Source: Setoptus koraiensis (Eukaryota; Animalia; Arthropoda). Taken from it: a stretch of 64,000 nt of DNA. The stretch lies in contig CM106585.1 in the NCBI GenBank assembly GCA_048013815.1, forward strand, positions 3,968,001-4,032,000, in the 5' to 3' direction. Position numbers and translations under genes: made by a program. Under the pieces are notes generated by a model. That model worked only from the letters and a program-made list of their open reading frames with translations. It had not been told where the DNA came from and did no database searches. This document shows, in pieces, positions 1-50,080 of the stretch. Within the stretch, counting starts at the first letter, position 1; every line of letters begins with the position of its first letter.

Positions 1-1719
1 ATTGTTGATGGTCACGACAAACGAGAGAATTACCTACGGAATGTGCAGCGGCCAATGGGCAATGTCAATGGCGCTGGCGATGGCTAATCAGCAGAAATGG
101 CCAAGAGACAAAAGAGGAATGAATGAGGACGACGGCAGTGCTGCTGATGGTGGTCGTGATTATGATGGTGGCGCTCGAGCGAACGCTTCTTCGGCCTCTC
201 TCTTTCTCTCTCACACACATTCGCGCACTGATATTTTGTTATGCTGCTAACAAAATATTCACAGTAGATTTGCTGTTGCCCGTAGCTTCGACGCGGCCAG
301 TGTTTTAGTTACACAACGCACAACTGGTATCGCTGGTTCTGGCTCACGTTGGTGCCCGTTCGCGGACGCCGAACAGCGAACACCGAACAAGATGGTGACG
401 GACAACGGAAGGCAAAGAGGGCACCAACAGAGAGCAACATTTGAGTAGCGGTTATATTAACTGCGTTCTTTCTATTTTCACTGCTTGCATGGCGCTGACA
501 CACACACACACTCATTGTGAATAGTAGCCGACGTAACGTGCTGTAACGTTGTGACCAACCATAACTGTTTATCAATGCCAGTTGAATGAATGAATGCGTG
601 TAGCACTGGTTGTAGTGTAGTATATAACAGTGGTGTGGGCCCTCGAACGCGAGCTGAGGGGCGACGAACATGAATGGACCAACGAAACGAACAATCATCG
701 CTGACGCTTCAGCGCATTTGAGCGCGCGTTACGTAAGTTCAAACGGACAGGCACAGCAATATGAGGGCTGCTGCTGCCGCCTCGATGGTACAGCTACAGC
801 ACCTAATGCTCACTAGTGGTGGCACCACCACTATGTACTACGTATGGCACCTCAAAGAATCATCACAATGGAGTAGTGGCGGCGTGCCACCGTTACGTAC
901 CACTACGCCAGCGATGATTATGACGGCCCATGTGATGGGACGGATGGGCACCGTCTAACAACGCGTCGGCCATCCAAATTTATTTTGTTTGCCAGTCGAC
1001 TCATATCAGCTATTCTCAGTGTCGCCAACTGATGAGCCAACAACAGTTTTAGCCAACCAACTATGTTCGCTCTGTCCTCTCTTAGTCGATGCAAGTCAAG
1101 CGACAATTGATACACTTAAACATTGAAACAATTATAACACAATTACGAAATTATGTCATCGATTGTTTTATCACTCAAACTAGCCAGTGGCCAGCAGCAC
1201 CACAACTCGACAACACTCAGAGACAACCAAACTAAACGATATTAACCACTAGTGATGACCATCCAAATAACCGAATCAATATGTGTTGTATTTTCTTTCT
1301 CTAGTCCGTCTTTTGATTGTTGCTCAATCGGTGTTCATCAATGATAATTGTTTCATCTTCAACAGTCACACTCACCGTTGAGTAGTAATCAAATGCTGAG
1401 ATATGAGAATTGTCGTCTTTTTTGTGCGTAACAAACGTAGTAATCAATAATAATAACCAACAATGATTGAATTTGTGGAAGTCATCGATCCTACTATTTA
1501 ACACAAACAAAATTACTTGAAATACACATAATGATGATATAAATATATTTATATTATGTAATAACATTCTATCATCATCACGCTCTATCATCAATTTTTC
1601 ATCTTGAATGTTCCATTTTTGTTAGTCTGTCAGTTTCATAGTCACTCTAGGTTTGTACATTATTTTCATAAGTATTGCAGTATAAGGCGCAACTTTAATC
1701 AATTATAAGTGTGTGTCAT

Positions 1720-4700
1720 TCACTTTGCTGTTGTTGCTGTATCGCATTTAGTATCCGAATTAATAATAGGCCTAAATAGGTAGTTATGCAAACCAGATTT
1801 GTCTTTTGTCACCTTGTAATTATTACTAATCTCTAGAATTTTGAGTCTTCTTTTAACGTGCGGCGGCTGGTAACTATCAGTGTCCAGTCTCCTTCTTCTG
1901 CAGCTATTCAAAACAGAACAACGGACCAAATCGGCAAGCATAGTGCGACTGACTGTCATGCCATCAATTAGTGGTAGAGCCAACCAATGCCTAAGAGGAT
2001 GATGAGACAATGAAACAATTTAAATATTCACGTTAGTTACTCAATTAATCAAGAACAATGGAAGAGAATCATAGTTATAGCACATTGGATGGACAGAGCC
2101 CATTACTTACTTTCCAAACGAAGTGTGGACGTTGATTTTGTATAAACCGTTCTTCATGGGGCAGATGAATAACTTAACAAAGTCACGAGCCTTCAATTTG
2201 GGTGGCTGAATATTAGTCTTGCCATCCGCCGACGCATTTGATTTGTCAACATAATATACGCCTGTTTCGGCAATCGAGAGTAGCCAATCGGTTGGAACTT
2301 TAACCAGATCTTCGTGACACTCTAGCCAACATATTATTATGGTCGTGTCGCATCCAATATTAGCGCACAAATTCGTCGACTTTTTCTTGGATCTAGATGA
2401 TGCCAAACTGTTACCATTCTGACCTTGACCTCTCTCAGATGTCGCATTGTGATGAGCCTGAGATTGCTGTTGTTGTCGATTACTCGAGGAAGACATCAAC
2501 ATGGAGTGGCTTGTTTGACTAGAGGCATCATCACTCGCCATACTAGATATAGATCTTCCGTCCAAATTATCAGCATTATAGGAATGATTTTCAGTGGAAC
2601 TCCTGGATCTGGATCGTAGTAATTGCTTGTCATTATCTGATCTACATTCACCGCAACTGGAATCATCGACGCCTGCCTGGTTTGTTTCAGTGGCTGGATT
2701 ATTTTCATTACTATCCTCCAATTCGATGACTTTGTGAGGTAAAATAAAGGCCAATTCTTGTGCCATATCGGTCCAATATAATGTCATGCACTCACCGTCG
2801 AAGACAGAACCACCGGTGTCTCCATTCAAATATTCACTTTTCGTGATGTGATTATCAGCTGGTGAATTATTCTCCTTGCTGTGGCAATCGTAATATTTAT
2901 TCCAGGATGTTGAAGCTTTACCAGTCCATCTACAATGACCATTGACCATGGTAGCTTGACCAAGTTGTAGAAGAAATTCAAAGAAACTTCTACTGACAAA
3001 TCGACGCCTGGTAGAGCTCTCTAGTATCTCTGCAGGGCTCACCTTATTCTTACGTATGTAGTAAACATAAGAAGTATCACAAGTTTGAACTGAAATTTTG
3101 TCTAAAGCCCTCAAATCTGATCCCAACTTGTGACGATCTTTCATATTCATGGTGACTAGAGACGTAGCATAGCCTAGTTGAGATATAATCAATCTTGCCG
3201 CCTCTAGATCGCTGGTAGGCTGAGGCTCTTCGCACTCCACCCGTTTTGTGCGAATAGACGATTCACGTTGAACTTTTTGTTCTGCCATCATTTGATGATT
3301 GTATATTTTGACCATCTTTTCACTATCAGAACGAATTTGATTTTGCATTTGTTCCAAAAGTTGAATCTGTGAAGCATCTATTACTTGGTCATTGATACAG
3401 GCAATGTCGAGCGATTTGGCTCTAGAAAGATAGGTTTCAAGCGATGGTACAAACGAGTCCAGTTCTATCCTAGGCAGCTTATCTAAAGAATCCGGGAAGA
3501 ACTTTGCCACATGATGATGATGATGGTGACTATTGCTCAAAAGGTGAGGCGAATATTGTTGGTGATGAGGTTGTGGCCTTTTGACCAGACCAGGTATTCT
3601 GTTTGCTAAAACTTTATCTTTCGACTTGGTCGAGTAGCGCTTGAATTTAAATTGCCAACAATGTTTTCCGAAAGGAGATCTTATAAGGCATATAACTGAG
3701 TCCTTGAAACTGGGTCCTTCGAAACAATCCATAAAAGCGAAAATGGTCAAGTTGTCATCGCAAAAATACTTGAAACAATCAAATGGGTCCTTCGAATCCG
3801 TAAGGTCATGACATTTCGTTTTGTCACAGTTACGTGTCGCTTTGAGAATTTCAAATAGAGATCTTTCATCCATGTCACTATCTATTGTCTTAAAGATATT
3901 CTTTCCCGATATGTTGGTTTCAGAAAAATCTATCCTCGAGCGAACCATACAAGAGTTGAGAAGAGATTCAGCAGCTTCCCTGACACGCATGGAAGACGGT
4001 TTCATACTCTTCTCTTCTCTACTTATCACCGAAGTGATTACTCCCTTCGCGCCTGGTACAGTTATTTTTGACTTTTGACCAGATACGCCAAGTTCAATTG
4101 TCTCCATGACGGTATTGACACAGATCTGATCTTGAAGTAAATAAGGATGATTGTAGAACCATACGGATAGACAATGATAGGCTGCTACAATAGTCGAATG
4201 CATATCTTTGGAATGGGCCGGCGGTGGACGAGAACATTGGTTGCTTATGTAATCGCAGATCCATTTCGTAGCCTGTTTATATTCCTGCTTCATATTGATG
4301 GTCATCTGACTGCCAGTGCTAGAAATATCATTATAGGTACTGTTCATGACGATTTTATTGAGATTGGTAAGCCTTGCGATGCTGGTCAGTAGTTCCAATG
4401 CCGATAAACTAACTTGAGTGTCGTGTTTCCAGACATTTATTAGTAAATGGCAAACTACATGAAGCGATTTTATGATAAACCCTTCAGTGGACCCATATAT
4501 GAAGCTCTGGCTAGTGTTTGTATCATTCATATTGTTCCTTTGATCTGTTGAATTAGAATATGTTGAACTAGCAACAGAAATACTATCTGAAACTTTGCTT
4601 TCAATACTTTTCTGATTTCTATTGGTTTTTGTCGTATTTGTTGTGTGCGACACGGTCGATGATTGACTAACAGTGGAGCATGACCGTGTTCTGGAATCTA

Positions 4701-7700
4701 TCTTGGTCACATTGCACTTTAAAAACTTAGGTTCTGTAGCTTGACTATCTTGAACTTGTTGTTCGTTGGAATATGATGAATATAGAGTTGTTGATGATGT
4801 TGTCGACGACAGAAGATTATCGTGTATTGATAAGGATAGGCCTCCAAATAGCATTTGCATATTCAATGGATCGGTTTCAGTTTGTAAGGCTATCATCAGA
4901 AGTCTGACTAAACGAGGTCGCAACGACGCAAAGGTTGTTGTTGGCGACGTTTCGTTAAGGCAATTTCTAATTGGTAATGTTCGGAAATGTAATGGATAAG
5001 CCAATAATGTCAACAACATGGAAATACAGGCCCGGCGTAATTCACTATTACGTGGTACAACAATTGGTTTCGTTTGTTGTTTAGATTGTTGACGAGGCTG
5101 TTGCGGGTTTGATATATCACGCTCGTAACATTCGAAAACTATCTCCATGGCTTTGATAAATAGAGGTATTAAAATATTTATACCATCTAGGTCATGTTGT
5201 AACAGATTGGTTGAATTCACTAAGACACTAGTCAATATCTGAGTCTTCATGACACCTGTATCCTCGCCAAAGCCATAAGTTAGACAATGCTGCAGGCATA
5301 AGTAGAAACGTGACAGATACACCGGGGATATATCCTCATCAGATAATTTGGAAGAGAACAGTTTACAGAGGATTCCGATAGCCTCAGATTGACCTGCCTC
5401 AAACGAGTCTGGAGTCAATTGTTGCTCCAAAAGAACTCGCTCTGGGTATTGCTGATTTCCGGATTGCTGTAAATGAGAATTTTTGACTGTGGAGAGCGAT
5501 GAAGGCGACTGACCAGTGCGTAACATCCGGGCACTGCCAGACGCGATCGATTGACCACTCGTCGTCGGTGATGGTGGTTGCCGATTTGAACCAGATCCTG
5601 CTAAAGAAGAGTTGGGTGTAGTAATGATAAGATCTGTTGGGTCATCACTCATAGTTATCTCTGAGTCTAAATCGGAACCGATTAGAGCGACACTAAACAA
5701 CCAGTCACCGAATATATGTAAGATAGTATTGCACTTTGGTCTATTGCGAGATAATCGCAATTCATTGTGATGAAAATTAGCAGAAACTAAAGTTCGAGAT
5801 CTATCGTATTGTTGTTGCATTGAGCGCTGACTTGAACCAGATACCGCGGACAATGGATACTGGAACTCATTGTTAGCTGTGCCTGTAAGAGATGAGTTGG
5901 TTATCTGGGTGTGCTGCTGACCAGATACGCTTGATTGCTTTAAGATTTGGTTGTTGTTGTTTGTTGCAGATAACGATCCCGTTTGTTGGCTAGAATATGG
6001 CACTGCTTTATGACTACCCTTCATGGAGGTTATAGATTTGATGCTATTTACAACTTTTCTGGAGTTTGTTGGAGTTTGGGCAATGTTAGTTGTGTTAGTA
6101 GCCGATTGCACTGTAGAACTATTTGGATTTGCATTATTCAATAAAGTATTGGCATCGTTATTTATACTTTGGCCTTGTGACTGAGCTGGATACATAGAAT
6201 TGCTAACATTGGATGCTAGAGACATGATAGATCCTCTGGGTTGTTGGTGGGCTTGCTTGTTGATGAATACTTCTGGGTCATCTTCAGCAGTGGAATACTG
6301 ATCTGTTTTTAGAAAAGTCTCTATGAAATCTGTTATGCCTTTCAATGACTTATGAAACACGGCAGGTAATATATTTAAACATGGATGCTGTCTAGGATCA
6401 ACAACGTTGTCTGAGGCACAAGCGTAGTGATAAAATTCGTCAGTTTTACTAATTATGTCTGGATTGGAAAGTTCCACAGGATTACCAATCAAATTTAGAA
6501 ACCTGTACCAAGCTTGCACAACTAGATCATAGCTCATTTCATCTATAACTGACTCTATTGATGGTGTCACGTTTGCCTGCTGTTGGTTGTTGGACATTAT
6601 ATTAGATTGCATAACATTTAGTGAAATTTTCTGTCCGGCTTCGGAATTCTTTTTAGACTTGTCCAAATTATAGCCATTTGAATATTCAGGCATCTGGGAC
6701 AATCTTTTTGTTAACATCAAAGTTATGCGACGCCAATGATCTATAAGGGCTGGACGGTGTCTCCAATTTAAACTGAGTTGATGGAATGTTTTCCAAAGGC
6801 TAGGAGTCGGTAAAGATCTACTACAAGCTAAAAGCATTAGCTCAAATAGAACTCCCAGTATTCGATCGCATAACTGAGTGCCAATATCATCTGGCTCAGT
6901 AGGTGATGATAATAGCTTGTCATTAATAGTTAAGAGAAAAGCCAATAAGTGGTCCCAAGTCTTATTTTCCATCAGATTGGCTGGATTGTGTGCAATTGTC
7001 TCAATCGTCCTCAATACTCTGTGGCATAACACGGCTTGTCTTGAGACGGAGGTAAGTAAAGCTTGCTGTTGCTCTTGGAGAGAAAGGCCAAAGAGGTTGA
7101 TCTGCCTGGGTAAAAAGATATTGTAAAGGTGACTTAACATCTTTCTAGCGTATCTATTGGGATCATCACGTATTGGAATAGGTAGCAGTTTAGACAATTG
7201 CTTATATCTGCTATCTTCATTATCGTCTTGATAAGGTATAAGTGCTGAGGTTAACCATTCACAATAGATGGTGCAGCAATCTTTGACCGAGTCCTGTTCA
7301 CCAGTTAACGAAAAAGGCATTGATAAACCGTAACCGATAATTTCCATGAGCCAATTGACATCTCTGTCGGTATCTAGGCGCGCGATCAAAGCTTGGACAG
7401 TATCTGGACTCATCATATAAGTACTTGTTGATGATAGGGCTGAGTTAGCATTAGAATTTTTGTTTATATTTTGACTTTGAGCTGATGAATTGGAATTATT
7501 GTTGTTGGACAAGGAATGGGAAGAGACTAAATTGGCTAAATTAGTCGGGTTAAACAGCTTTGCCAGAGGCTGGACAACGACTTGCACTAATTGTAAACCA
7601 TTGACTTGATCATGTAGCTTATGTAAGACACTAAGGCAATCACGTTCGATGGCTTCAGCTACATTTAGTGTGCTGCAATCTTGATATCCCGTATAAGATG

Positions 7701-7872
7701 ATATGCTATTAAATAATTGGGATTTACACGACACACTATGGGCGTGTGACGATACAGAGCCCATGGAAGGCGTGGGTGACACATTTGGCCTAATCATTTG
7801 ATTGTTGGCTGTTGCTTGGACAGTCATAATTGTAGGATTAGCGGCTTTTGACAAACTGTTAATTGCTAGCAT
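1720..7872 (-). CDS. RALGAPB: Ral GTPase-activating protein subunit beta; exons 7872-2111 and 1990-1720 (stop), 120-bp intron 2110-1991
   Basis: The 1921-aa ORF has RALGAPB-like segments: LSVLHKL..VVVQPL, WLMEIIGYGLSMP..CCTIYCEWL, FEAGQSEAIGILCKLFSSK, RPPPAHSKDMHSTIVAAYHCLSVW, and a Rap-GAP-like C-terminal part (FFEFLLQLG, LYWTDMAQELAFILP). The GTAAGT donor at 2110 and TTAG acceptor at 1991 join in frame (SFGK-HWLALPLIDG). The last exon gives the RALGAPB C-terminus PLIDGMTVSR..LVR..CRRRRLDTDSYQPPHVKRR. Confidence 0.93.
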
Positions 7873-9666
7873 TTGATATTAAGTTGTCAACATTGTCCGG
7901 GGAATAATGTAATTAAGTAAGTAGCTGACCGGGGGGCAATCTTCTTAGTGCGTCCTCTTATCTGTGTGTGTTTGGCAGTCTCATTATATTGTTGTTATTA
8001 TTGTTATATCAAAAAATGATATTCCAAATGTGTGTTCCAAAATGGTCGTTTTGTCTAGTTTGAGTGGGCTCCGTAATGAAGCTCGCCATTTGTTGTTATG
8101 GTGAGAAAATTATTCGCTTGTGTTGATGATAATGTATGTGTAGTGTTGTGATATTTTTAGGTTGCTGTTGTTATACGAAGATCCAATGCAGATTGGGCGA
8201 ATCATATAACAAGTGCTAGCGATTGGTAATAGTGCCAGTGGTGCTGTTGTGGCTTCTGATAATAATAATACTGGATAACGCACACAACAATAATACAGAT
8301 AATAATGGATATAGTAATAATAACTATAGTTATAATAAATAATAATGATGTTAAGGGTTTGTATGGCTTCCACTGTTGTTGGTACCATACATTGTTGTGA
8401 ATTTAAGTACTGACATAGGTATACATAATAATAATAATAATAATAATAATTTCATTAGTCAGGTGTGTTGCAGAAGCTAGCTGGCTATTGTTTCAATATT
8501 GGCAAAAGAATTTCTCTCGTTTCATTCATTTATTCCACTTCTTGCTCGCTACCGTCTGCGCAGTGTGCACCATCACACACAATGTTTTAGTTACGGCTGA
8601 TCTTGTGAATACATTGTGTACCACAAAAGAGAGCATTGAACTCTCATGCCAGACGCCGGACTAGAGCATCCAATCGAATTGTATCACGCAAACACATGTT
8701 TTGGCACATCGATTCTATGCTGCAATTCTGCACTGGACACTTCTGTGCTCGCATCGCACAGATTGTCCGCTTTGCGCACAATATCTTGATCGATTCCAAC
8801 AAAATGAGTTACAAGGCACACACGAACACACACTCACACAACTACTTGTTGTTGTTGTTACATATATTTTATTATATAATAGTTGCAATGAATTGTCGTT
8901 ATGTAACGTAGATATACGAACACACACACACACACACACACAACTAAACAAACACCTACCTGACGCTGACGCAATGCATTTATGCAATTGAACATTGTTT
9001 TTTGTATCTCCCCTACTCAATATGTATTTATGTGTGTAGCAAGGCTAAACTAGAAGGTCTTGAATTATCTGTCTCGAGTTATTGAATGAAAAATTCACTT
9101 CTATTTGTATCGTCCATTTCTGCCGCAAGTCCGAAAATTATGACCGTTCGCCGGCGTCCACAGTCGTTCTGTGCCGAGACAATCTTGAACCCTAATCGGT
9201 CGAGGTCAGGGAGTCTCGTAATCGTTGTTGGTGTCGTTCCCCACAACAACTCGCAAGACCATCGAGGATGCGATGGCCAGTAGCATTAAGTGTCACTATG
9301 TTTGCAAGAAACAAACGACAAAAAAGAAAAAGAATGGAACTCTCACACGCAATTCCATTTGATATGTAGACGAATTGATGTGAGACGATAGGTGTGTGAA
9401 GTCATTTAAATGTTTATGCATGTGTAACTGACAGGTATTATGATAAGCGCTTGGCAACAATTGAACATCGACAAAAAACAAAGTTATCGTCTTTGATAGT
9501 AACAAAATTTAAACTCTTCTCTATATCACATTTAATGATATCACAATTACATGGTAATCACACAGTGTTGTTGCTATCTTCAGATGCAGATAAGCGCAAT
9601 GCTGCAAAAAACAACCATCGACGTAATACACGTCGGACGTATAACAATTATGTCATCTATTGTTGT

Positions 9667-39005: not shown

Positions 39006-40957
39006 TGTTGTTTCACATTGCTTTCCGATGATGATCGCACAAAAACTAAACTGTCACTTCATACGGGTTGGCCTGTGATTCGACAAAAGTTTCTCGTTAC
39101 TCATGGCACCATATCAGTGAGACGATATAAATGTGAACCGATAACATTTGAGGCCGACATTTGAGGCCAATGGAATCGTCGTCGTCGTCGCAACTTTAGC
39201 GCCATAGTTCATGCGCGCAATTTAAGCGCGGTATCGCACTATGTGAGCCTTGTTCGCTTTTGTCAGTCCTGCTGAGCAGAGCGTCCGCCAGGGGAGCTGT
39301 TGACGCGATCATGAACACACAGCGATTGCCTGTGTGTTCCGTTACATTCTTCATACAAACACATTGATTCATTTTAGTGTGCACTGGTCGCAGTTACGAA
39401 AACGCATCCTATTCAGTCCAAATGCTATTGGCAATCATTCTGCAGATCGAACAAACTGCCGCTCGCTCGCAATGCTAAATGAAAGCCGCGAGCGCCGCCC
39501 TCGCGGCGCTAATCTCAACTTGTCGTTGCAACAGTGGATTAGCGACACCCACATACACACAGTGCTTGCGCTATATTTTTGCGCCCATAAAGCGCAGCTA
39601 ACTGTGATCTGCACCACTGTGCGAGCATCTGTGTGTGTTTGTATGAGCACAGAATATGGGCAGAGAGCAAGGAGAAAGAGAAGTTTTACGCACCCAAAAG
39701 TATATGAACAAACAAACAACATTGGGTGCGGCGAACAAGTTTTCAACTCAACACAAGAATGTTCCAAGCCGCCAGTTCGGCTAAAGTGCAGCCCTAATGC
39801 TATAGCTTGCGCACACAGTGCCAGAAGGATAAACTTTCAAGAGCGCTCAAGTGGAGGTCATTCGATTATTAGGCACAACGGTGGCACAATGATGCACGGA
39901 GCTATTTTTGGGGGCGATTGGAAAATTTGTTAAAAAATGTCTACGCAAAACTGACTGATTGCCGGTGTGGGGGCGCATCGAACGCTAAAATCCGCATCAC
40001 TTTTCGTTATTATCGCGTTCTTGTTGCAACATACAGCCACTCAGAATTGGCATTTATTGTGCCAACCGTTGTGCGGTGCACATTGCACAGTTTTGGGGTG
40101 CACACCCTGTGCACAAGCTTCACAACGCTTTTGCCGAAATGCACTGTGATTAGTAGCGTAGAACATTTGCCCAGAGTAGAGCTTTTGGTTGTAGCACCCT
40201 TTACGCTCACACAGACAGAGTAGCGCTAATAATAATAATAATAATAGTAATAATAGTTATAGTAATGGTAATAATTACGATAATAATATTATTAATAATA
40301 TCACTGATAATACTGCTAGCTGCTAGTAATAACAAACTATACGACTAGTAGACAAATCAAATATACATACAGACACACACACACAAATATATACAATAGT
40401 ATTAGGCGAGGAAAAGGCAAATATTCAACAACGATCCATAACACAATAGTAACTTGTAATAAAATAAATGAAGATAAGGAAAAAAGAAGAAATGTTTTTC
40501 TAGAGTATGCAACATCGTCATTGCTTTTATTCCTAATCTGATAGAATTATTTTAGCTCATTCTATATTGATGCCGATACCACAATTCATTATCAGGGAAC
40601 AACATCTATTTACTGGACGTTCATTCTAGGCCCATTGTTATCATCATCTGTTATACAATTTACCATATTATTATTATCATCATCACTTTATCCCCATATT
40701 GTTATTATTGTTGGCATATTATTGTTCTTTCTCACCCGAACAATAATCACCACAAATAAGGAAACGCCAAATCGGCCACCACATTATTACACCACATTTG
40801 TAAATAACCAGTCATTACCATAAACCACCAATCATCATTGCGTCATACACAACCAACAATATTAAGTCATTACAAAAACAAACACCATTTCAACCCAAAA
40901 ACACCCCCTCCCACACACACTCACATACACACACAATTAACAACATCGATCATCGTC

Positions 40958-42238
40958 ATGGATTGGCCTGAGTGGTCCTCTTCTCATTCATCATCAATTA
41001 AGTCTATTTCAAGGTGCCCTCTATCATCGACAATTAGCATATTTAGTGATGAACCGCCATTAATATCGCTACTAACATCGCGCAATGCCGATCGCACCAC
41101 ATCATCACCCCATGATAGAGACTTAATAGGATTAACTATCAGCACAGCACCAACAACGACAACATCAACAACAAACCCGACAACAATTACAACCACCGCC
41201 AACAACAACAACAACAACAATACCATCACCTCTGCTACTAAAGATCATTCACCTAGACTTGAAGCAGATTTCACTCATCTTAATAGTCACCTACTTGAAT
41301 TACAAAAGGAAATCAAGGAGGAAGAGGATGAAATATTTGCTGATATTAATAGCGCAATTGATAGTCATACAAACTTCAGATCATCATATTTCAGTTATAA
41401 CCCCCACCATCCCTTAGCTTCGGCTTCTGTAGAATCGGCTCTAAGTCTCAGACAAAACTTGATTAAATCTTCTACTAGCGGCCTCAATAATAGCGATGGC
41501 AACAGCTACGATAGCTCCGATTTTAATACCACCACCAATGACGATGATAACGACCGTCAACAATCAATCTTACTCAAATTCGGAGTCGACGTCGCACATT
41601 CAACACATCAATGGTGGTCAGAGAACGATGGCAGCTCCAGAGAAAGCGAAGAAAAATGCAACACACAAGTAGCGGATGATGAGGACGATGTCTACGATGA
41701 AGAGGATAATAATGTTGCACTTACATATGGTTTCAACAACTATTGTGAGGATCAAAATCAATATTGTTCAAACGATGTCGAGGAACACATGGCGGGCTCT
41801 TATATAGATCAAACTGATCCAGAGTTGCTTAATTACCAAGTCAACAATTTACCTAAACCTTGCGTTTTCTTTCTGGAGGGAAATTGTCGAAGGAGTGATT
41901 GTAAATATTCTCACGATCTTTCTAATATTACTTGCAAATATTGGATCGAAGGGTTCTGTTTCAAGGGTGATTTGTGCCCATTTCTTCATAGCTTCAAGAT
42001 ACCAGGAGAAGGTCAAGATGTTATTATAAATGAAGATGGTTCTGATATCAATTCAAATCATGCAATTAATCCAACCTTCACAATTGAATCTGAGGCCGAT
42101 TTTCCCTCTCTGCCGCTGGATCCGCCAGTTGTCTGTGCCGCCGAGACAGCTCATCTCAGAGATATTAAGGACGAAATACTAAAAGCAAATCCAGCGGTCG
42201 TCTTTAAAATGGCCAAGAAGAAGCGTAAACGAGGCTGA
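40958..42238 (+). CDS. intronless protein with two tandem CCCH zinc fingers, acidic/low-complexity N-terminus and basic C-terminal NLS-like tail
   Basis: CVFFLEGNCRRSDCKYSH and CKYWIEGFCFKGDLCPFLH (C-x7/8-C-x4/5-C-x3-H), then EADFPSL and KKKRKRG. The first ATG is at 40958; the ORF-track start at 40838 is TTG. Confidence 0.85.
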   Translation: MDWPEWSSSHSSSIKSISRCPLSSTISIFSDEPPLISLLTSRNADRTTSSPHDRDLIGLTISTAPTTTTSTTNPTTITTTANNNNNNNTITSATKDHSPRLEADFTHLNSHLLELQKEIKEEEDEIFADINSAIDSHTNFRSSYFSYNPHHPLASASVESALSLRQNLIKSSTSGLNNSDGNSYDSSDFNTTTNDDDNDRQQSILLKFGVDVAHSTHQWWSENDGSSRESEEKCNTQVADDEDDVYDEEDNNVALTYGFNNYCEDQNQYCSNDVEEHMAGSYIDQTDPELLNYQVNNLPKPCVFFLEGNCRRSDCKYSHDLSNITCKYWIEGFCFKGDLCPFLHSFKIPGEGQDVIINEDGSDINSNHAINPTFTIESEADFPSLPLDPPVVCAAETAHLRDIKDEILKANPAVVFKMAKKKRKRG

Positions 42239-42764
42239 AATTGAGAGTCAATTCACATCACCAGCTCAACCTATTATCTTTCCTAGTAGACATCATCTTA
42301 CCTTACCATCATTGATAACGAAGGTTTTAGTGTTGACATCCTGCAACACACATCTACAAGATTGAACCAACCATAAAAAAAAATCATTACATTTTAAATA
42401 TCGAAATTACTATACATTCATCTGTGATATTTGTGGCTTTGTGAATTCGCAAGTTCAAAATAACAAACTTTCATTATGAACCATCATTAATCAATTCACA
42501 CTGTCTCGTGTCTCCATCAATCTATCATAGGATATAAGAGTTAGTTTCCTTGCGACAAGCGAGTTTTTCATGTGATCTTGTTTATTTCTGTTTCATTTTA
42601 TTGGGTCTCGTGAAGGGAGATTTTTCTGTCTCTCGAGTGGGTAATGGAATGCCATAACTTATAAAACTGCATGGGCAACAAGGCATTGTATGAATATGCA
42701 AACAAGACACATTTGTAGTGTCGTTAGAAAGTATATATGTGATCAAGGAGGCCTGTGTGATACA

Positions 42765-44097
42765 TCAATAAAAAATCAACCCTGAGGATACCCTATCCCT
42801 TCTCTCGAAGTAGCTAAGATAAGCGTGTAGCTCAATTACGCCTAGCGCATTGTTGGCTCGTATGAATTTCATTTTGCACCAAACGTAAATATCATCATTT
42901 GCTATAATTCGAGCGGCAGCCCTGGCACAACTTTTGGCACCCAGAACTGTTGTGCAACCAAGACCCGACGGCAATATGAGATTGGCACCAAGTTGTTCAC
43001 GAGGAGTTGTAGGTGGAAAACAATTTATCACGGGTATGTCCGAATTTCCGTTCACTACTTGACCCAATGCGTTACTTTCGTTGCATATTGCGATGATGCA
43101 TTTACATGATGGCCATTGATTCAATCTGGCTACCACTTCCAGCAAGTTTTGAGTTGATTCATGGACCGAGGTGGTAATAGTTGCAACTGTGAAAATTCCA
43201 CACGAATCTTCCAGTTCCTTGACTATTTCCTTGGCAATTTCCTTGGAAATTTCCTCTCCATCGCGATTTTCATCTATTAGGATAGCAATCGATGGCGTAG
43301 ACATTGATTTTGGTGGACTATGTTGTGAGATCAATGTTTCCAATAATTCTTCTTTTACGGTCACAGGAAGGCATAGTTCCCACAATACAATTTTGACTCC
43401 CTCTGATATTCGAATGACTCCGATTCGAACTTCCACATGCGTCAAAAGCTCATGGACGCCCATCAAACAGACCCGCTCCAAAATCTCAAAAACAACTGTT
43501 GCCAAACTATCCACATCCGCCACCATATTCGTTACTACGACTGCCCTGATGGACATGTCCAAATCTGCAAATTTTTTCATTGCCATCTCCTCTCTAGACC
43601 ACAGTCTTCGGTTATCGGGATCATCCAACGTATGGCGCTCTATCAGTAATGGTGCAAACCTAGAAGCTAATTCAATTTTAGGATGACGTTCTACAAATTC
43701 AGGTGTTGCTATACGATAGGGGGACCAAACAGATTCAAATATCTTGCATTTCTTGGCAACAAAACCAATCTCTGAATCAGAGACACACTCAACGAATGAG
43801 GTGCGTACTCCGATAGTATTGAGAAATTTCAAAACAGAAAAGGATTGTCGTATCGCCGGAACATCTTCACCCTTTCTCTCAACAAACCAATAATCTTCGA
43901 TCTCTTTATGCTGATAGAATCGACACCATTCATCCTCATCAATCAGTTCTCCTTTGACCGCTAACAAATCGATATAACAAATTGTGACGAATGGTAAATG
44001 AAACGATTATAAATGATGAATGCGCTATTTAAGTTTCGAGAGGCTCATCTATTCTGTTCACAACCAGCTGGCTAAACTCACCCTCCAAACTACCCAT
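42765..44097 (-). CDS. PAICS-like: divergent PAICS/ADE2-like protein, copy A (SAICAR-synthetase-like + AIR-carboxylase-like scaffold, catalytic motifs lost); exons 44097-44082 and 43960-42765, about 403 aa
   Basis: Matches to the metazoan PAICS scaffold: RIATPEFVERHP, VFEILER, ALGQVVNGNSDIPVINCFPP, LILPSGLGCTTVL..AAARII..VWCKM. The ORF-track start is TTG with no in-frame ATG upstream. A mini-exon ATG GGT AGT TTG GAG G|GTGAGT and the acceptor TTGTTAG| at 43961 give a 121-bp intron and the in-frame N-terminus MGSLEAVKGEL. Confidence 0.85.
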
Positions 44098-44512
44098 GAT
44101 TGCTCTCACAGAAATGTTTTTTCAGTATGAGGTGTGCTTGCAAAGAATTTACAGAGATATCTCGTTTGGGCGACGATTTATTTGAATTTTAATGTTTTCC
44201 TTTCGCTCAGCAACGAGTGTTTGCAGCAACCGACATGTGTGTTGTTTGTTAGATTGGCTTCCATCCAATAAGCCACACACCGAGCCTATCTAACAGTTCG
44301 GTGACAACTACATTCTTTTGCAATTGTCCGTGTCGTATAAATATCGTCAACGTATCGATCAAATATTGCTGCGCGATTCAATGTCACCGCATAAGTCACC
44401 CGTTGAATACCCGGCAAAGAGATTGTCATCATAATTGATCTAGATGATATTCATCATGATACACATCAGATGAAGCTCCCTTGAGGTCCACAGCACGATG
44501 CAGCGGGAGTCA

Positions 44513-44904
44513 GTTGAATGTCCAAATCATTATCAAAGATTACAAAAAAAAAAAAAAACGATTAATATCATATATAGATCATCTCTATAATTCTGATAGC
44601 AAGCGTTGAATTTAGTGTGCCCGTAGAAATGTTTTATTCAATTCTGGTTTCACCCGCACCTGCCTCTATCTACCAATACTGGCAGCAACGGATACCAATT
44701 GGCAGAATCGGCAGAAATACGACAGGAAGTGGTTTGAGCCATTGATTTTCTGCCTACAAGTTAAGCCATTAAAGTGAAACAGTGTGGGGAGGACAGATTG
44801 TCGCTCGTATAGCGCCGAAATATTTTTCCCACGGAAACTGACTATGATAATAAAGAGCGGATTTGACTCAGAACTCGATCATCTTTGATATAAGTTTGTC
44901 CGTA
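44513..44904 (-). pseudogene. decayed partial duplicate of the 3' part of the MFS transporter gene (source about 48314-48770)
   Basis: The minus strand reads YGQTYIKDDRVLSQIRSLLS*SVSVGKIFRRYTSDNLSSPHCFTL versus YGQTFIKDDHFLSQIGSLSSLSVSVGKLFWGYASDKLSYLHCFTL in the intact gene (TTG to TAG at 44842-44844). 44513-44610 matches the last intron/exon junction at 48314-48440. Confidence 0.85.
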
Positions 44905-45182
44905 AGAGTTGGTTCCTCATCTTACAATTCAGCCCCTGAGAATCACCAAAGAATACGATGATTCATTGCGGCAAGCAAGAGTTTTTTCTTGTTATCTTGT
45001 TGCTTCTGTTTCATTTTATTGAGTCCCTCGAAAGAGGTTTCTTCTGTTTCTCGGGTGGCCACCGGTATACCAAAAAGTATAAAACTACGTGGACAACCAG
45101 GCATTGTATGGATATACAAACAAGACACATTTAAGGTGTCGCTAGAAAATATTTATGCTATCGTGGAGGCCTGTGTGACACA

Positions 45183-46482
45183 TCAATAATAAATAGGCCT
45201 ATTTGATACCTTCGATCTCTCATAGTCGTCAGTATGATGCTTCTTCATCGTGTCGAACGCAGCTTGGGATCGTATGAATCTCATTTTAAACCAAACGTTT
45301 ATATCATCATTGGCTACAATTTGAGCCGCAGCCCTGGCACAGTTTTTGGCACCTAAAATTGTGGTGCAACCAAGACAACCAATCGGTAATATCAAATTGG
45401 CGCCGAGTTGTTCGAGATGAGTCGAAGGTGGAAAACAATTTATCACGGGTAGGTCTGAAGTTCCATTCAACACTTGGCCTAGTGCGTTACTTTCATGGCA
45501 TATTGCGATGATGCATTTACATGAAGGTGAATTCAATGAATTCAATCTTGCTACAACGTCAAGCAAGTTTTGAGGTGCTGCATGGGCCGAGATGGAAATT
45601 AATGTAACTTTGAAAATTCCCCAATAATCTTTTAGTTCCTTGATTATTTCCTCGGCAAAATCCCGGCTCTCGAGAATCTCCATCACGATAACAATTGATG
45701 GCGTACACAGTGATTGAGGTGGACCATGATCTGCTATCAGTTTGTCGAAGATTACTTGCGGCATTAACTTACTCAAGAATATCCTCCACAAGATAATCTC
45801 CCTAGATTTTGTAATTGCAAGTTGAAAATATATTTCATCCAAAGACTCATGGTAGGCCAGGCAAACACGCTCTAGAACTTCAAAAACAAGTGCTGACATA
45901 CTGTCTGCTTTTCTACAATTAAAATATCCTCTCAACGAGTCGCTATCAGAGAGCCTACATCCTCTATATCCTTCTGCAGACCGGAGCGTATGGTCATCTG
46001 GATAATGCAGAATACATTGGCCCATCATCAATTTCACAAACCTACAACCTGGTTCAAAATCAGGGTGAAGTTCTACAAAATTAGACGATGCTATACGATG
46101 GGTGGACCAACCAACTGCGAGTACCTTGCATTTCTTGGCAACAAAACCAATCTCTGAATCAGAGACACACTCAACGAATGAGGTGGGTAGTCCAATAGTA
46201 TTGAGTAATTTCAAAAGAGAAATAGATTGCCGTATCATCGGAACATCTTCATTTTCCTCGAACTCAACAAACCAATAATCTTCGATCTCTTTATGCTGAT
46301 AGAATCGACACCAGTCATCCTCATCAATCAGTTCTCCTTTGACCGCTAACAAATCGATATGACAAATTGTGACGAATGGTAGATGAAACGATTATAAATG
46401 ATGAATGCGTTGTTTAAGTTTCGAGAGGCTCATCTATTCTGTTCACAACCAGCTGGCTAAACTCACCCTCCAAACTACCCAT
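45183..46482 (-). CDS. PAICS-like: divergent PAICS/ADE2-like protein, copy B; exons 46482-46467 and 46345-45183, about 392 aa
   Basis: Paralogue of copy A, 2385 bp away, with the same mini-exon and 121-bp intron. Scaffold motifs: RIASSNFVELHP, VFEVLER, SAHAAPQ, ALGQVLNGTSDLPVINCFPP, LILPIGCLGCTTIL..AAAQIV. Confidence 0.85.
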
Positions 46483-48175
46483 GATTGCTCTCACAGAAAT
46501 GTTTTTTCAGTATGAGGTGTGCTTGCAAAGAATTTACAGAGGTATCTCGTTTGGGCGACGATTTATTTGAACTTTAATGTTTTCCTTTCGCTCAACAAAG
46601 AGTGTTTGCAACAACCGACATGTGTGTTGTTTGTTAGATTGGCTTTCATCCAATAGGCCACACACAGAGCCTATCTCGTTGAACACCCGGCAAAGAGATT
46701 GTCATCATAATTGATCCAGATGATATTTATCATGATACACATCAGATGAAGCTCCCTTGAGGTCTACAGCATGATGCAACCTATGCAATACCATTGCAAA
46801 TATTCATGAGAGCAAATTCAAGTGTAAATCTTTTTCGTGGTGCATTGTTATACTGGCGCCGCTATTGTTAAAGTTTAGTATATGTGTCTCGGGTGAGGCT
46901 ACCAACAACATCGCCGGCAGTTGCAATATTTAGGCGATGCTCGCCATTTGATAATTGTTTCGACCGTTTCGATCAAATCAATCACAAGTCGTGAATAACA
47001 AGAACAAAATCATCGTTCGATATGCAGCGAAACTTGTTCTCTAGTGAATTATGTCCAGCTGCTGGCTACAATTGACCCCAGCGATGGTCATTATCGACTG
47101 TAAAAGTATGGTGACAGCAATATGGTTGTGGGCATCAGCATCATTTGCGATTTGACATGGCGATAGTATTCAATATTTGCCATCAAAATCATGGTGCGAT
47201 TGTGCTGCAAGTCAACGAACAATCGGCAGACAGTCGGATGGTCCGCGCATACTGGCATCCTCTGACACCAAATGATATGATATTGTGAGATTAAACAGAC
47301 CACAATTGCGCAATCATATCATCGGTGGCAATCATGACCATCGATTTGTTTATTTCGCGTTTTTCTGTTATCTGTTGGTGAACTTATTTGTTTCCTGGAT
47401 TCGACTTTAGTTCACTCACATGCTGCGGTTCAACTCCCGGTCGGTTTATCCGTCCGTCGTCGCCCCATTTTCGCGTCATCGATCGGCGCTATACAACAAT
47501 TGATGGGCATGGATATGCGTTCGTTGGAGGGAGGCGGAGGTGCAGCATAGGCCAGACCCAATCTAACAACAACAACAACCAGGCAACGTCAAAACAGCGC
47601 CAGACCAACTCGCGACATCAGTCTGATACTGGCAGGCTCTCGTCTAAGGCGTGCTGACGATGATGAACAATAATGATGATAATAGTCGATCGCGCTAATG
47701 AATTTTGTCGCTAACGAACAAGCCCGACAGTTACCGCGTAGGTATATCGATGTTGATATTGTTCGTCCGGCTGTAGTTGTTGTTGTGACCCCTGCTTCCA
47801 AGATAGTAGTGTCTATGATACATGAAGGTGCTCGTGTTTTAATTGCCCAAGTGTACACAGCCAATCTATTACGTAACACCTGATAGCAGTGACCGTATTG
47901 GTAGAGATTTTCCTTCGAAAAGTTATCGCGAACCTTATATAGAAGTGAAAATCGTCTCGCTCTAAACAAACAACTTGTCAATCACAACCATATCGTACTC
48001 ATTAACTAGCGGACAAGGTCGTCAAGTTACATAATTTAATTGACGTTGTGGAAGAATGTATTCACAACAAATACGTATCTGTTGGAATCAACCTATGTGT
48101 ATCACAAACTTGACAAATTATTAAATAAGTATCATAACAGCTTTGGCGATTCTAACTGTAGTTATAAAAGATGTT

Positions 48176-50080
48176 TTAGTTTCTTTTTTTATGATAACAA
48201 GTATACAATATAAGAATAGTTTCTGATATAAGTGTAAACGAACATAACAAGAAACAAGGTAAATATCGGCCACTATTGCTGTACAGGTAGCCAATAAGGA
48301 ATGATGAGGGTATGTTGAACGTCTAAATCATGATCAAAGGTTAGAAAAACAAAAAACAAAAAACGATTAATATTATATATAAATCATCTCTATGATTTTG
48401 GTAACATGCGTTGAATTGTCGGCAAAAACAGACTTACCGCAGAAACCCAAACAAGGCCTGTTATGAAGGCGGCGTGGCGTTGTCCAAATATTTTGAAACA
48501 TTCGACATTAAGAATGACTGAGTAACCGTTCATGGACGAGAAAGCCATCAATATACATATGACGTAAGTGTATCGGCTTGCAAGAACAAAGTCGAATGGC
48601 AACATTAAGACAGTGGTAAACATGATTACACTTATTAAAGTGAAACAGTGTAAGTAAGACAGTTTATCGCTGGCATAACCCCAAAATAGTTTTCCTACTG
48701 AAACGGACAATGATGATAAAGAGCCAATTTGGCTAAGGAAGTGATCATCTTTGATGAAAGTTTGTCCGTATTGTTTTTGCATGGAGCTCAAAAACACGCT
48801 AGCTTGAGAGGATAGAGCGATAGTAATGAATAACACTGCAAACTCTTTAGATAGAACCATAGACCAGGGGCCAGTCGCATTGTGTTCGATTGAATTTGTT
48901 GATAGTTCCCTAGTGTTGATAAGAGGTCTATGTAAATCATCGTCGATGTTCTGATGGTTACTATCACAGTGATTGTGTGGTGTTTTGCCTCCAGCTAAAA
49001 TCAATCTCTGAGACAACTTTTTCTGTTGTTGTTCGTTGGCCGGTGGCCTGAACAAAAGTGAACATCCGATTGTCTGAATGATGAAGTAGGTGAAGCCTAA
49101 CTTCAAGAAGAGATTGGGAACTCTATCAAGTATCTCGTCTTGCACAAAGATTGTCTTTGTGGCAGGCAGATTGTTCGGGTTGACTATGAGCGTAATGATG
49201 AAGTTAAAAAAGAAGGCACCTACCCCGTAACCGGCCATTATGATGCCACCAGCCAGGCCCTTGTTTTTTGGATACCAACCAAATGAGTTGACGATAGTGG
49301 GCGTCCAGGCAATACCACAACCTAAACCGGGCATTATACCATACGTGAGAAGAACATAATAGTAGCCATAATTGATTGTCCATCTCGTGGATATGAGGCC
49401 GATGCAATAACATGCAGATCCGATCATTGTGGCGTACCGTGCCGAGCCGCATCTCAATTCAATGTAACCGCCCAGACCAGAGCTGAGTCCACTTGTTAGA
49501 CTGCATATAGAGCCAATCCACAGAATGTTTGATTCGTCCATCAAATGGCCGCCAGGAGAGTTCTTAATCATATAGGATATGAGATAAGAACCCGTGTTAC
49601 TGTTGTTGTTTACACCGTGAGCAGCAAATGTTTTGGGTTAATGCAGTGTTCGTTATACATGTGCTAAAAAATGACCTCCGTTTAATATATTAATATCCTT
49701 GAATAATAATATTCAACGAGATTGAGAACTCACCTCATTGTTTGTAAATGGATCAGGCACAAGGTTATGAGGAAACCGGCCAAAATGGAGCATTTTGCTT
49801 TGCTCAGCCTGCAACAGCCAAACAACTGAATGTAAGCCCTTTGGAGGTGTCTCTGGTGCTGGCCGCCGGGCGCAATTACTGCGGCCGGCTCTCCGTTATT
49901 GTCCACAGTAATGCGGGCGTCAATCATTAGTAATGGATCGGGGCCATTGTTGATCACAATTGTATCGTCGTTGCCGGCTTGCCTATATTCCGATGTGTCC
50001 CCATTGAAGGATCTGTCATTTATAACTAGATATTTTCCCTTGTTATCATCTTTTTCCGCCGTGTAGCTTCTCCATCTCAT
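48176..50080 (-). CDS. major facilitator superfamily transporter (oxalate:formate antiporter / monocarboxylate-transporter-like); exons 50080-49734, 49599-48438, 48322-48176
   Basis: About 12 hydrophobic segments, with LGGYIELRCGSAR, YGIMPGLGCGIAW, GWYPKNKGLAGGIIMAGYGVGA and LFWGYASDKL motifs. GT-AG introns of 134 and 115 bp restore the frame. The last exon reads TFNIPSSFLIGYLY...LILYTCYHKKRN*. Confidence 0.88.

Follow-up and report, generated by a model that had tools for sequence, protein, structure and literature searches.

The systems closest to the locus described here are canonical PAICS, the LarB enzyme and the prozymes. PAICS is a drug target with a central place in purine synthesis and a core component of the purinosome, and the core of its octamer is the half derived from AIR carboxylase (AIRc). 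LarB, an active bacterial enzyme of the nickel-pincer cofactor pathway, is of old origin and consists of one domain with a PurE-type fold. Prozymes such as that of AdoMetDC in Trypanosoma brucei are dead duplicates of oligomeric metabolic enzymes that keep the oligomerisation part and are maintained by selection alongside an active copy (PMC5201418). Here we report two neighbouring genes, A (42765-44097) and B (45183-46482), on the minus strand of a 64,000-nucleotide stretch of DNA (hereafter the window) from the plant-feeding mite Setoptus koraiensis (contig CM106585.1, positions 3,968,001 to 4,032,000). Judging from their sequences, A and B probably represent a lineage-specific, non-catalytic family derived from PAICS that has kept the octamer-forming half. 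A first-pass annotation had placed two full-length, stop-free genes of PAICS type at 42765-46482; its coordinates proved exact, the frames are uninterrupted, and both halves of each product match PAICS.

Compared with canonical PAICS (2H31/6YB8, 4JA0 and the eriophyoid-mite enzymes P0001-P0009, which include Aceria tosichella A0A6G1S5Z1), A and B share the two-domain order, the modelled fold, an intron near the start of the gene and a score above the threshold of the Pfam AIRC family. They differ in lacking 22 of the 24 residues of the SAICAR synthetase (SAICARs) site and 11-12 of the 18 residues of the AIRc site, in three deletions, in the absence of a SAICAR_synt match, in a new N-terminus (MGSLEA), in a C-terminal tail of ~20 residues, in their tandem multi-copy state and in a stem ~14 times longer. 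Dead metabolic-enzyme paralogues are a recognised class; our literature search found no PAICS pseudoenzyme, in line with the annotation, and no mite PAICS expansion. Whereas the AdoMetDC prozyme is a single conserved partner of a co-existing active enzyme, A and B form a multi-copy, fast-evolving tandem family for which an active copy is seen only in a sister species. With LarB they have in common the PurE-type fold and a preserved histidine region, together with altered substrate-binding residues, but they would be recent animal derivatives of a fused PAICS gene that lack the phosphate-binding residues.

Homology to PAICS and loss of active-site residues

The A and B proteins are 55% identical (E 1e-147). 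Both exceed the gathering cutoff of 30 bits for Pfam AIRC (A, 50.6 bits; B, 47.5 bits), whereas SAICAR_synt (PF01259), which is present in all ten nearest canonical relatives, gave no match at E<=1 in either; of the two HMMER checks proposed with the annotation, one was positive and the other negative. A phmmer search of PDB sequences aligned PAICS chains over both halves (insect 4ja0 at 3.5e-31, human 2h31 at 1.6e-27), with 45 bits for the SAICARs-derived half of A, and a hidden Markov model built from canonical N-terminal halves recognised those of A (E 2e-23) and B (2e-17). In both products a single chain joins an N-terminal half of SAICAR-synthetase type to a C-terminal half of class II PurE (AIRC) type. 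An AlphaFold2 model of A (pLDDT 88.8, pTM 0.86) and a Foldseek search with this model, whose top matches were PAICS structures 6yb8, 4ja0 and 2h31 over the full length (TM 0.73-0.81), bear out the earlier prediction that the fold would be kept, although this agreement is partly built in because the AlphaFold2 input alignment consisted mainly of canonical PAICS. An ESM Atlas feature search with A was uninformative, returning a single unrelated match (score 0.75).

The nearest relatives of A and B are canonical eriophyoid-mite PAICS, with 37-42% identity overall and 50% to P0001 in the AIRc half. Since P0001 and the Aceria enzyme are themselves 59% identical in this half, the AIRc half of A and B is not unusually diverged outside the active site. 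P0001 is encoded on contig L001 (6806-8193) of Logan sample SRR33593474 and is a canonical PAICS with every catalytic motif. In the automatic gene call on L001 the first intron has been taken as coding sequence; translation probably begins with the ATG at 6806, ahead of an intron of ~100 nt, and the predicted N-terminus is M-I-K-G. The same sample holds a 92%-identical match to the RalGAPB gene of the window, whose best named matches come from Fragariocoptes setiger and Aceria tosichella. Because its contigs are 84% identical at the DNA level to window positions 823-8041, and dS against the window is 0.55-0.56 for both RalGAPB and the CCCH zinc-finger gene beside A, we identify SRR33593474 as a sister species. 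Of these two species, only the sister species showed a canonical PAICS, the genome of S. koraiensis being represented here by the 64-kb window and run contigs.

We mapped the published active-site residues of human PAICS (PMC9376930) onto A and B through a HMMER alignment to 2h31 and an alignment with eight canonical eriophyoid PAICS, all of which keep all catalytic motifs. In the SAICARs site, 2 of 24 residues are retained in each copy. The ATP loop EGKTK, annotated as EDEWC in both genes, is indeed EDEWC in A but EDDWC in B (Gly16-Lys19 reading D-E-W-C and D-D-W-C, respectively); all the other motif changes listed at annotation were seen against the eight canonical enzymes. Thr40-Asn43 are lost within a 15-residue deletion, SKDRITAGDG and its flank being missing. 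IEWVTRR has become SVWSPYR (A) or VGWSTHR (B), with Glu97 replaced by V/G and Val99 by S, while Phe129, Lys131 and Asp137 are replaced in both copies and Asp133 survives in A only. DMKVEFG reads HVEVRIG in A and EIYFQLA in B, so that Met190, Lys191 and Glu193 are V-E-R and I-Y-Q. The segment SDVIDNDS is missing, and with it Asp207, Asp212 and Ser213; Trp214 is retained in both copies and Arg215 in B only. Lys228 and Arg232 fall inside a deletion of ~36 residues around PNGDKRLMLDKQ. Together, the three deletions (~15, 8 and 36 residues) take out substrate-binding segments.

The AIRc site retains more, namely 6 of 18 residues in A and 7 in B. The Met272-Asp277 loop (MGSxSD) is unrecognisable in both; A has 5-7 additional residues there, and no placement restores more than one motif residue. 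SAHK is changed to SVHE in A and SAHA in B, which keeps Ser301 and His303 and replaces Lys304 by E or A, respectively. AGRSNG is changed to CNESNA (A) or CHESNA (B): Ala329 is now Cys, Gly330 is N/H, Arg331 is Glu and Gly334 is Ala, and Ser332, Asn333 and Leu335 remain in both copies. In human PAICS, Ser274, Ser276, Lys304 and Arg331 hold the AIR phosphate (PMC9376930). All four of these side chains are lost in A and B, and several of the positions are now acidic. The annotation had considered both active sites lost, which is accurate for the SAICARs site and too strong for the AIRc site, where Ser301, His303, Ser332 and Asn333 survive. Because the binding and catalytic residues of both sites are largely gone, the alignments strongly suggest that A and B have lost both ancestral activities.

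The survivors raise the alternative that A and B have remained enzymes and that their PurE-type pocket has been remodelled to accept a different, non-phosphorylated or cationic substrate. The histidine general base of AIRc is universally conserved (PMC9376930), and both copies keep it together with the neighbouring Ser301 and with Ser332 and Asn333 of the 70s loop, although Ser301 and His303 by themselves would not suffice for activity. A and B share the changes Ala329 to Cys, Arg331 to Glu and Gly334 to Ala, which argues that these pocket replacements are under selection. Other reactions have evolved on the PurE fold, LarB being an example. A new active site common to both copies would not be expected, however, to differ in its P-loop as A and B do; the ribose-phosphate holders Ser274, Ser276, Lys304 and Arg331 have been replaced along with three backbone-critical glycines, and the sequence suggests no ligand or reaction. 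We therefore regard a new catalytic function as unlikely and favour a non-catalytic family.

Selection, transcription and the search for relatives

To the residue losses we can add evidence that the AIRc-derived half is still maintained by purifying selection. We estimated dN/dS (omega) between A and B by the Nei-Gojobori method with bootstrap confidence intervals (CI), leaving the homogenised 5′ tract described below out of the overall figure. Omega was 0.60 (CI 0.45-0.79) outside the converted tract and 0.32 (CI 0.18-0.64) in the AIRc core. Of the columns invariant among canonical eriophyoid enzymes, 38 of 69 are retained in both copies in the AIRc half, compared with 31 of 159 in the SAICARs half, where 40 are deleted; together with the low omega of the core, these counts support the proposal that the C-terminal half is the best kept. 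Departures from invariant AIRc columns lead to the same new residue in A and B in 16 cases and to different residues in four, so the remodelled state of this half is itself conserved. All ten indel events that separate A from B are in frame. When substitutions alone were simulated neutrally at K=0.2-0.27 per lineage (half the observed dS), at most 0.05% of copies kept an open frame. As read from these comparisons, the pattern is one of an early burst of change, after which the PurE-like half was conserved and the other half went on eroding or diversifying.

For gene A there is evidence of transcription. A 296-nt contig from run X7 aligns without mismatches to 43745-43960 and 44082-44161 and skips exactly the A intron (43961-44081). 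Genomic DNA could not have yielded such a contig, so A is transcribed and its transcript spliced in the modelled way; the 5′ untranslated region (UTR) measures at least 64 nt. Further exact contigs fall on other parts of A in X7 and X8. The annotated splicing of the two genes is therefore real for A, though it amounts in each gene to a single small intron of 121 nt after a 16-nt exon.

Searches for other members of the family, covering ~15 billion proteins and JGI metagenomes, found nothing like A and B. A word-index protein search found canonical PAICS only, as did an exhaustive HMMER search of 1.84 billion representatives, which gave 92 matches, the best at 35-45% identity. The 45 protein matches that were aligned or read, short fragments included, all carry SAHK and GRSNG except P0043 (XP_072263227.1, 374 aa). 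This protein was rejected as a family member, being a vertebrate-like degenerate prediction unrelated to the mite genes; it has EGINQ for EGKTK, SAYT for SAHK and a deletion in the DNDSW region, and probably represents a retrocopy that has entered annotation as a protein. When JGI metagenome contigs were scanned with peptides specific to the family, a first scan gave no match and a second recovered one canonical eriophyoid PAICS (L005), and an exact look-up of the MFS protein of the window found no contig. Logan contigs break inside the repeated A/B units. The sister-species contig with the CCCH neighbour ends 205 nt past the stop codon of that gene, and the contig with RalGAPB covers window positions 823-8041 only, so neither reaches the locus.

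Several observations weigh against the reading of A and B as a maintained, non-catalytic family. In addition to the surviving general base and its neighbours, which would fit changed chemistry, and to the partly built-in fold, omega in the SAICARs-derived half is indistinguishable from 1 (C-terminal part 0.60, CI 0.33-1.05; N-terminal part 1.19, CI 0.47-3.8). The flanking genes RalGAPB and CCCH have omega values of 0.06-0.08, so that the constraint on A and B is far weaker. No RNA-type contig in the X7 and X8 runs covers the coding part of B, and the RNA nature of X7 is itself deduced from the spliced contig, while no holder of the stretch is recorded as RNA. Finally, the protein collections searched yielded no family members from the sister species, although they would be expected there, the divergence of the family from the canonical gene being much older than that of the two species.

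Much of this would also fit duplicates that are decaying to pseudogenes and look intact through youth or through patching by conversion from other copies: an omega near 1 in the SAICARs-derived half, constraint much weaker than on the neighbouring genes, clear 5′ gene conversion with a mosaic of dS along the gene, a copy B without an RNA contig, and orthologues missing from the searched collections. Yet A-B dS is ~0.55, which makes the pair as old as the sister-species split, and both 400-codon frames are open where the simulation leaves almost none so. The indels are all multiples of three, the CI of omega in the AIRc core lies below 1, shared derived residues are conserved, and the A transcript is correctly spliced. 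Decay, and with it the young-pseudogene alternative raised at annotation, is contradicted by the uninterrupted frames and in-frame indels as well as by the spliced transcript and an omega below 1; we consider it quite unlikely, and retain the reading of A and B as a non-catalytic family.

Origin, duplication and gene structure

A quick maximum-likelihood tree (LG+G4) placed A and B together (SH-aLRT 100) as sister to P0001 (93) within the eriophyoid clade (99). The stem of A and B measures 1.34 changes per site, compared with 0.093 for P0001. In the canonical gene on L001 the first intron is inferred to lie within one codon of the position of the A intron and to share its phase. Because the near-start phase-1 intron has been retained, the family appears to have arisen by DNA-level duplication and not by retroposition. 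It is highly improbable that A and B are retrocopies, transposon-carried copies or horizontally acquired PAICS fragments: the loss of parental introns that defines a processed pseudogene is not seen, both genes nest in the eriophyoid PAICS clade beside the sister-species enzyme, the duplicated unit includes a piece of a neighbouring MFS gene, and a Pfam scan detected no transposon domains on either product.

The order of the later duplication can be read from this MFS gene. An intact MFS transporter gene lies beyond B, and its 3′ end has been copied into the A unit. Since it carries this relic, the A unit appears to be the derived copy, and the pair to be a local tandem duplication of B plus part of its MFS neighbour. 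The relic seems to be transcribed, as an X7 contig matches it exactly at 44742-44933. In addition, within 42300-46900, contigs of the DNA runs X1 and X2 join 43127 to 45587 via 38 foreign letters, and several contig pieces of 85-95% identity have loose ends near 42866-43047. Further A/B paralogues are therefore likely elsewhere in the genome.

The 5′ ends of the two genes have a separate history. About 300 nt of promoter-proximal DNA, the 5′ UTR, exon 1, the intron and the first 35 codons are near-identical between A and B (at least 97% by eye), and near-identity including the upstream DNA extends over 43655-44502 in A and 46037-46778 in B, with 109 extra nt in A (~44292-44400). Along the gene, A-B dS is a mosaic: it is 0.12-0.15 up to about codon 100, reaches 1.1 in the central part and drops to 0.40-0.45 in the 3′ third. 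We considered whether conservation of the 5′ non-coding DNA might reflect diversifying selection acting on the coding sequence and rejected this idea, as the synonymous sites of the first ~35 codons are equally frozen. For the same reason gene conversion among paralogues is preferred, and the homogenised 5′ ends fit it.

The features of the locus are collected in the table. The long open frames run over 42765-43967 in A (400 codons) and 45183-46352 in B (389 codons). In both genes exon 1 is followed by a GTGAGT donor, and the intron closes in TTAG at the border of the long exon. The N-termini of A and B both read M-G-S-L-E-A-V-K, which fits a loose pattern for N-myristoylation (Gly2 and a small residue in position 6), and the new first exon may supply a lipid anchor. 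The C-terminal tail extends ~20 residues past the canonical end and is poorly kept except for R-x-(K/R)-V-S and the final I-(F/Y)-Y. A 171-codon open reading frame antisense to A (43171-43686, plus strand) was set aside, as it had no support as a gene. The CCCH zinc-finger gene (40838-42238, plus strand) converges on A and has long Thr/Asn-rich low-complexity runs; its product is 93% identical to the sister-species protein over 415 aligned codons, and contigs of X7 and X8 lie on its 3′ flank (42300-42485).

Table. Features of genes A and B and the DNA around them (window coordinates)
Feature	Position	Strand	Remarks
Gene A exon 1	44082-44097	-	16 nt (ATG and 13 further nt); codes for M-G-S-L-E plus the first base of the Ala6 codon; GT donor immediately after
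Gene A intron	43961-44081	-	121 nt, phase 1, GT..AG (CT..AC on the plus strand); skipped by X7 contig
Gene A exon 2, stop included	42765-43960	-	Spliced product 403 aa
Gene A SAICAR-synthetase-derived half, strongly eroded	43332-43960	-	About residues 6-215
Gene A AIR-carboxylase (class II PurE)-derived half, conserved core	42843-43295	-	Pfam AIRC 2e-13
Gene A C-terminal extension	42768-42842	-	Not in canonical PAICS; last residues I-F-Y; from alignments
Gene B exon 1	46467-46482	-	16 nt, identical to A exon 1
Gene B intron	46346-46466	-	121 nt, GT..AG; almost identical to A intron
Gene B exon 2, stop included	45183-46345	-	Spliced product 392 aa; Pfam AIRC 1.7e-12
Gene B C-terminal extension	45186-45250	-	Ends I-Y-Y
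AATAAA downstream of gene A	42597-42602	-	163 nt past the A stop codon
AATAAA downstream of gene B	45015-45020	-	Same 163-nt distance past the B stop
Homogenised A/B tract	43655-44291	-	Against B 46037-46676, 91.6% overall; spans proximal promoter, 5′ UTR, exon 1, intron and first ~100 codons
MFS 3′-end relic between A and B	44513-44900		Strand not assigned; pieces 44513-44612 and 44768-44900 match 48314-48417 and 48634-48766 at 80-84%

Possible role of the family

The history that we propose would begin when the bifunctional PAICS gene of the mite itself was duplicated at the DNA level together with its intron. A burst of change would then have stripped the ATP- and substrate-binding elements from the SAICARs half, and the phosphate-binding residues of the AIRc half would have been replaced, mostly by acidic ones. 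This new state of the AIRc-derived half would have been conserved from then on, while the SAICARs-derived half kept drifting or diversifying in frame. Later, a local tandem duplication would have made the A-B pair, copying part of the neighbouring MFS gene, and gene conversion would have homogenised the 5′ ends.

According to this model, the A and B proteins would no longer make CAIR or SAICAR but would keep the PurE-like core on which the PAICS octamer is built. Their role would be that of oligomeric subunits devoid of enzyme activity, forming homo-oligomers whose pocket is remodelled or joining the canonical octamer. The roles put forward at annotation, as regulators, ligand sensors or structural proteins, are likewise hypothetical. 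PurE-type octamers have their AIRc sites at the interfaces between subunits, so that de novo purine synthesis could be tuned or shut down by dead subunits. The more specific idea that A and B are prozyme-like subunits, co-assembling with the canonical PAICS octamer via the PurE-like core and tuning or shutting down purine synthesis in this plant-feeding mite, is one that we put forward tentatively and hold to be rather doubtful. If it were true, the ability of a plant-feeding mite to take purines from its host would give such tuning a context. The fast-evolving SAICARs-derived half and the Gly2 N-terminus, with its possible myristoylation, could give each copy its own partners or locations.

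One practical consequence concerns annotation: genes such as A and B risk being named automatically as "bifunctional PAICS" and wrongly counted as evidence of an intact pathway. With both active sites stripped, the octamer-forming half conserved and several copies present, the family would be a natural experiment on the non-catalytic roles of the parts of PAICS. Our findings thus suggest A and B as a testable candidate case in which subunit poisoning or scaffolding would regulate purine synthesis, in a group of minute plant parasites whose genomes are strongly reduced.

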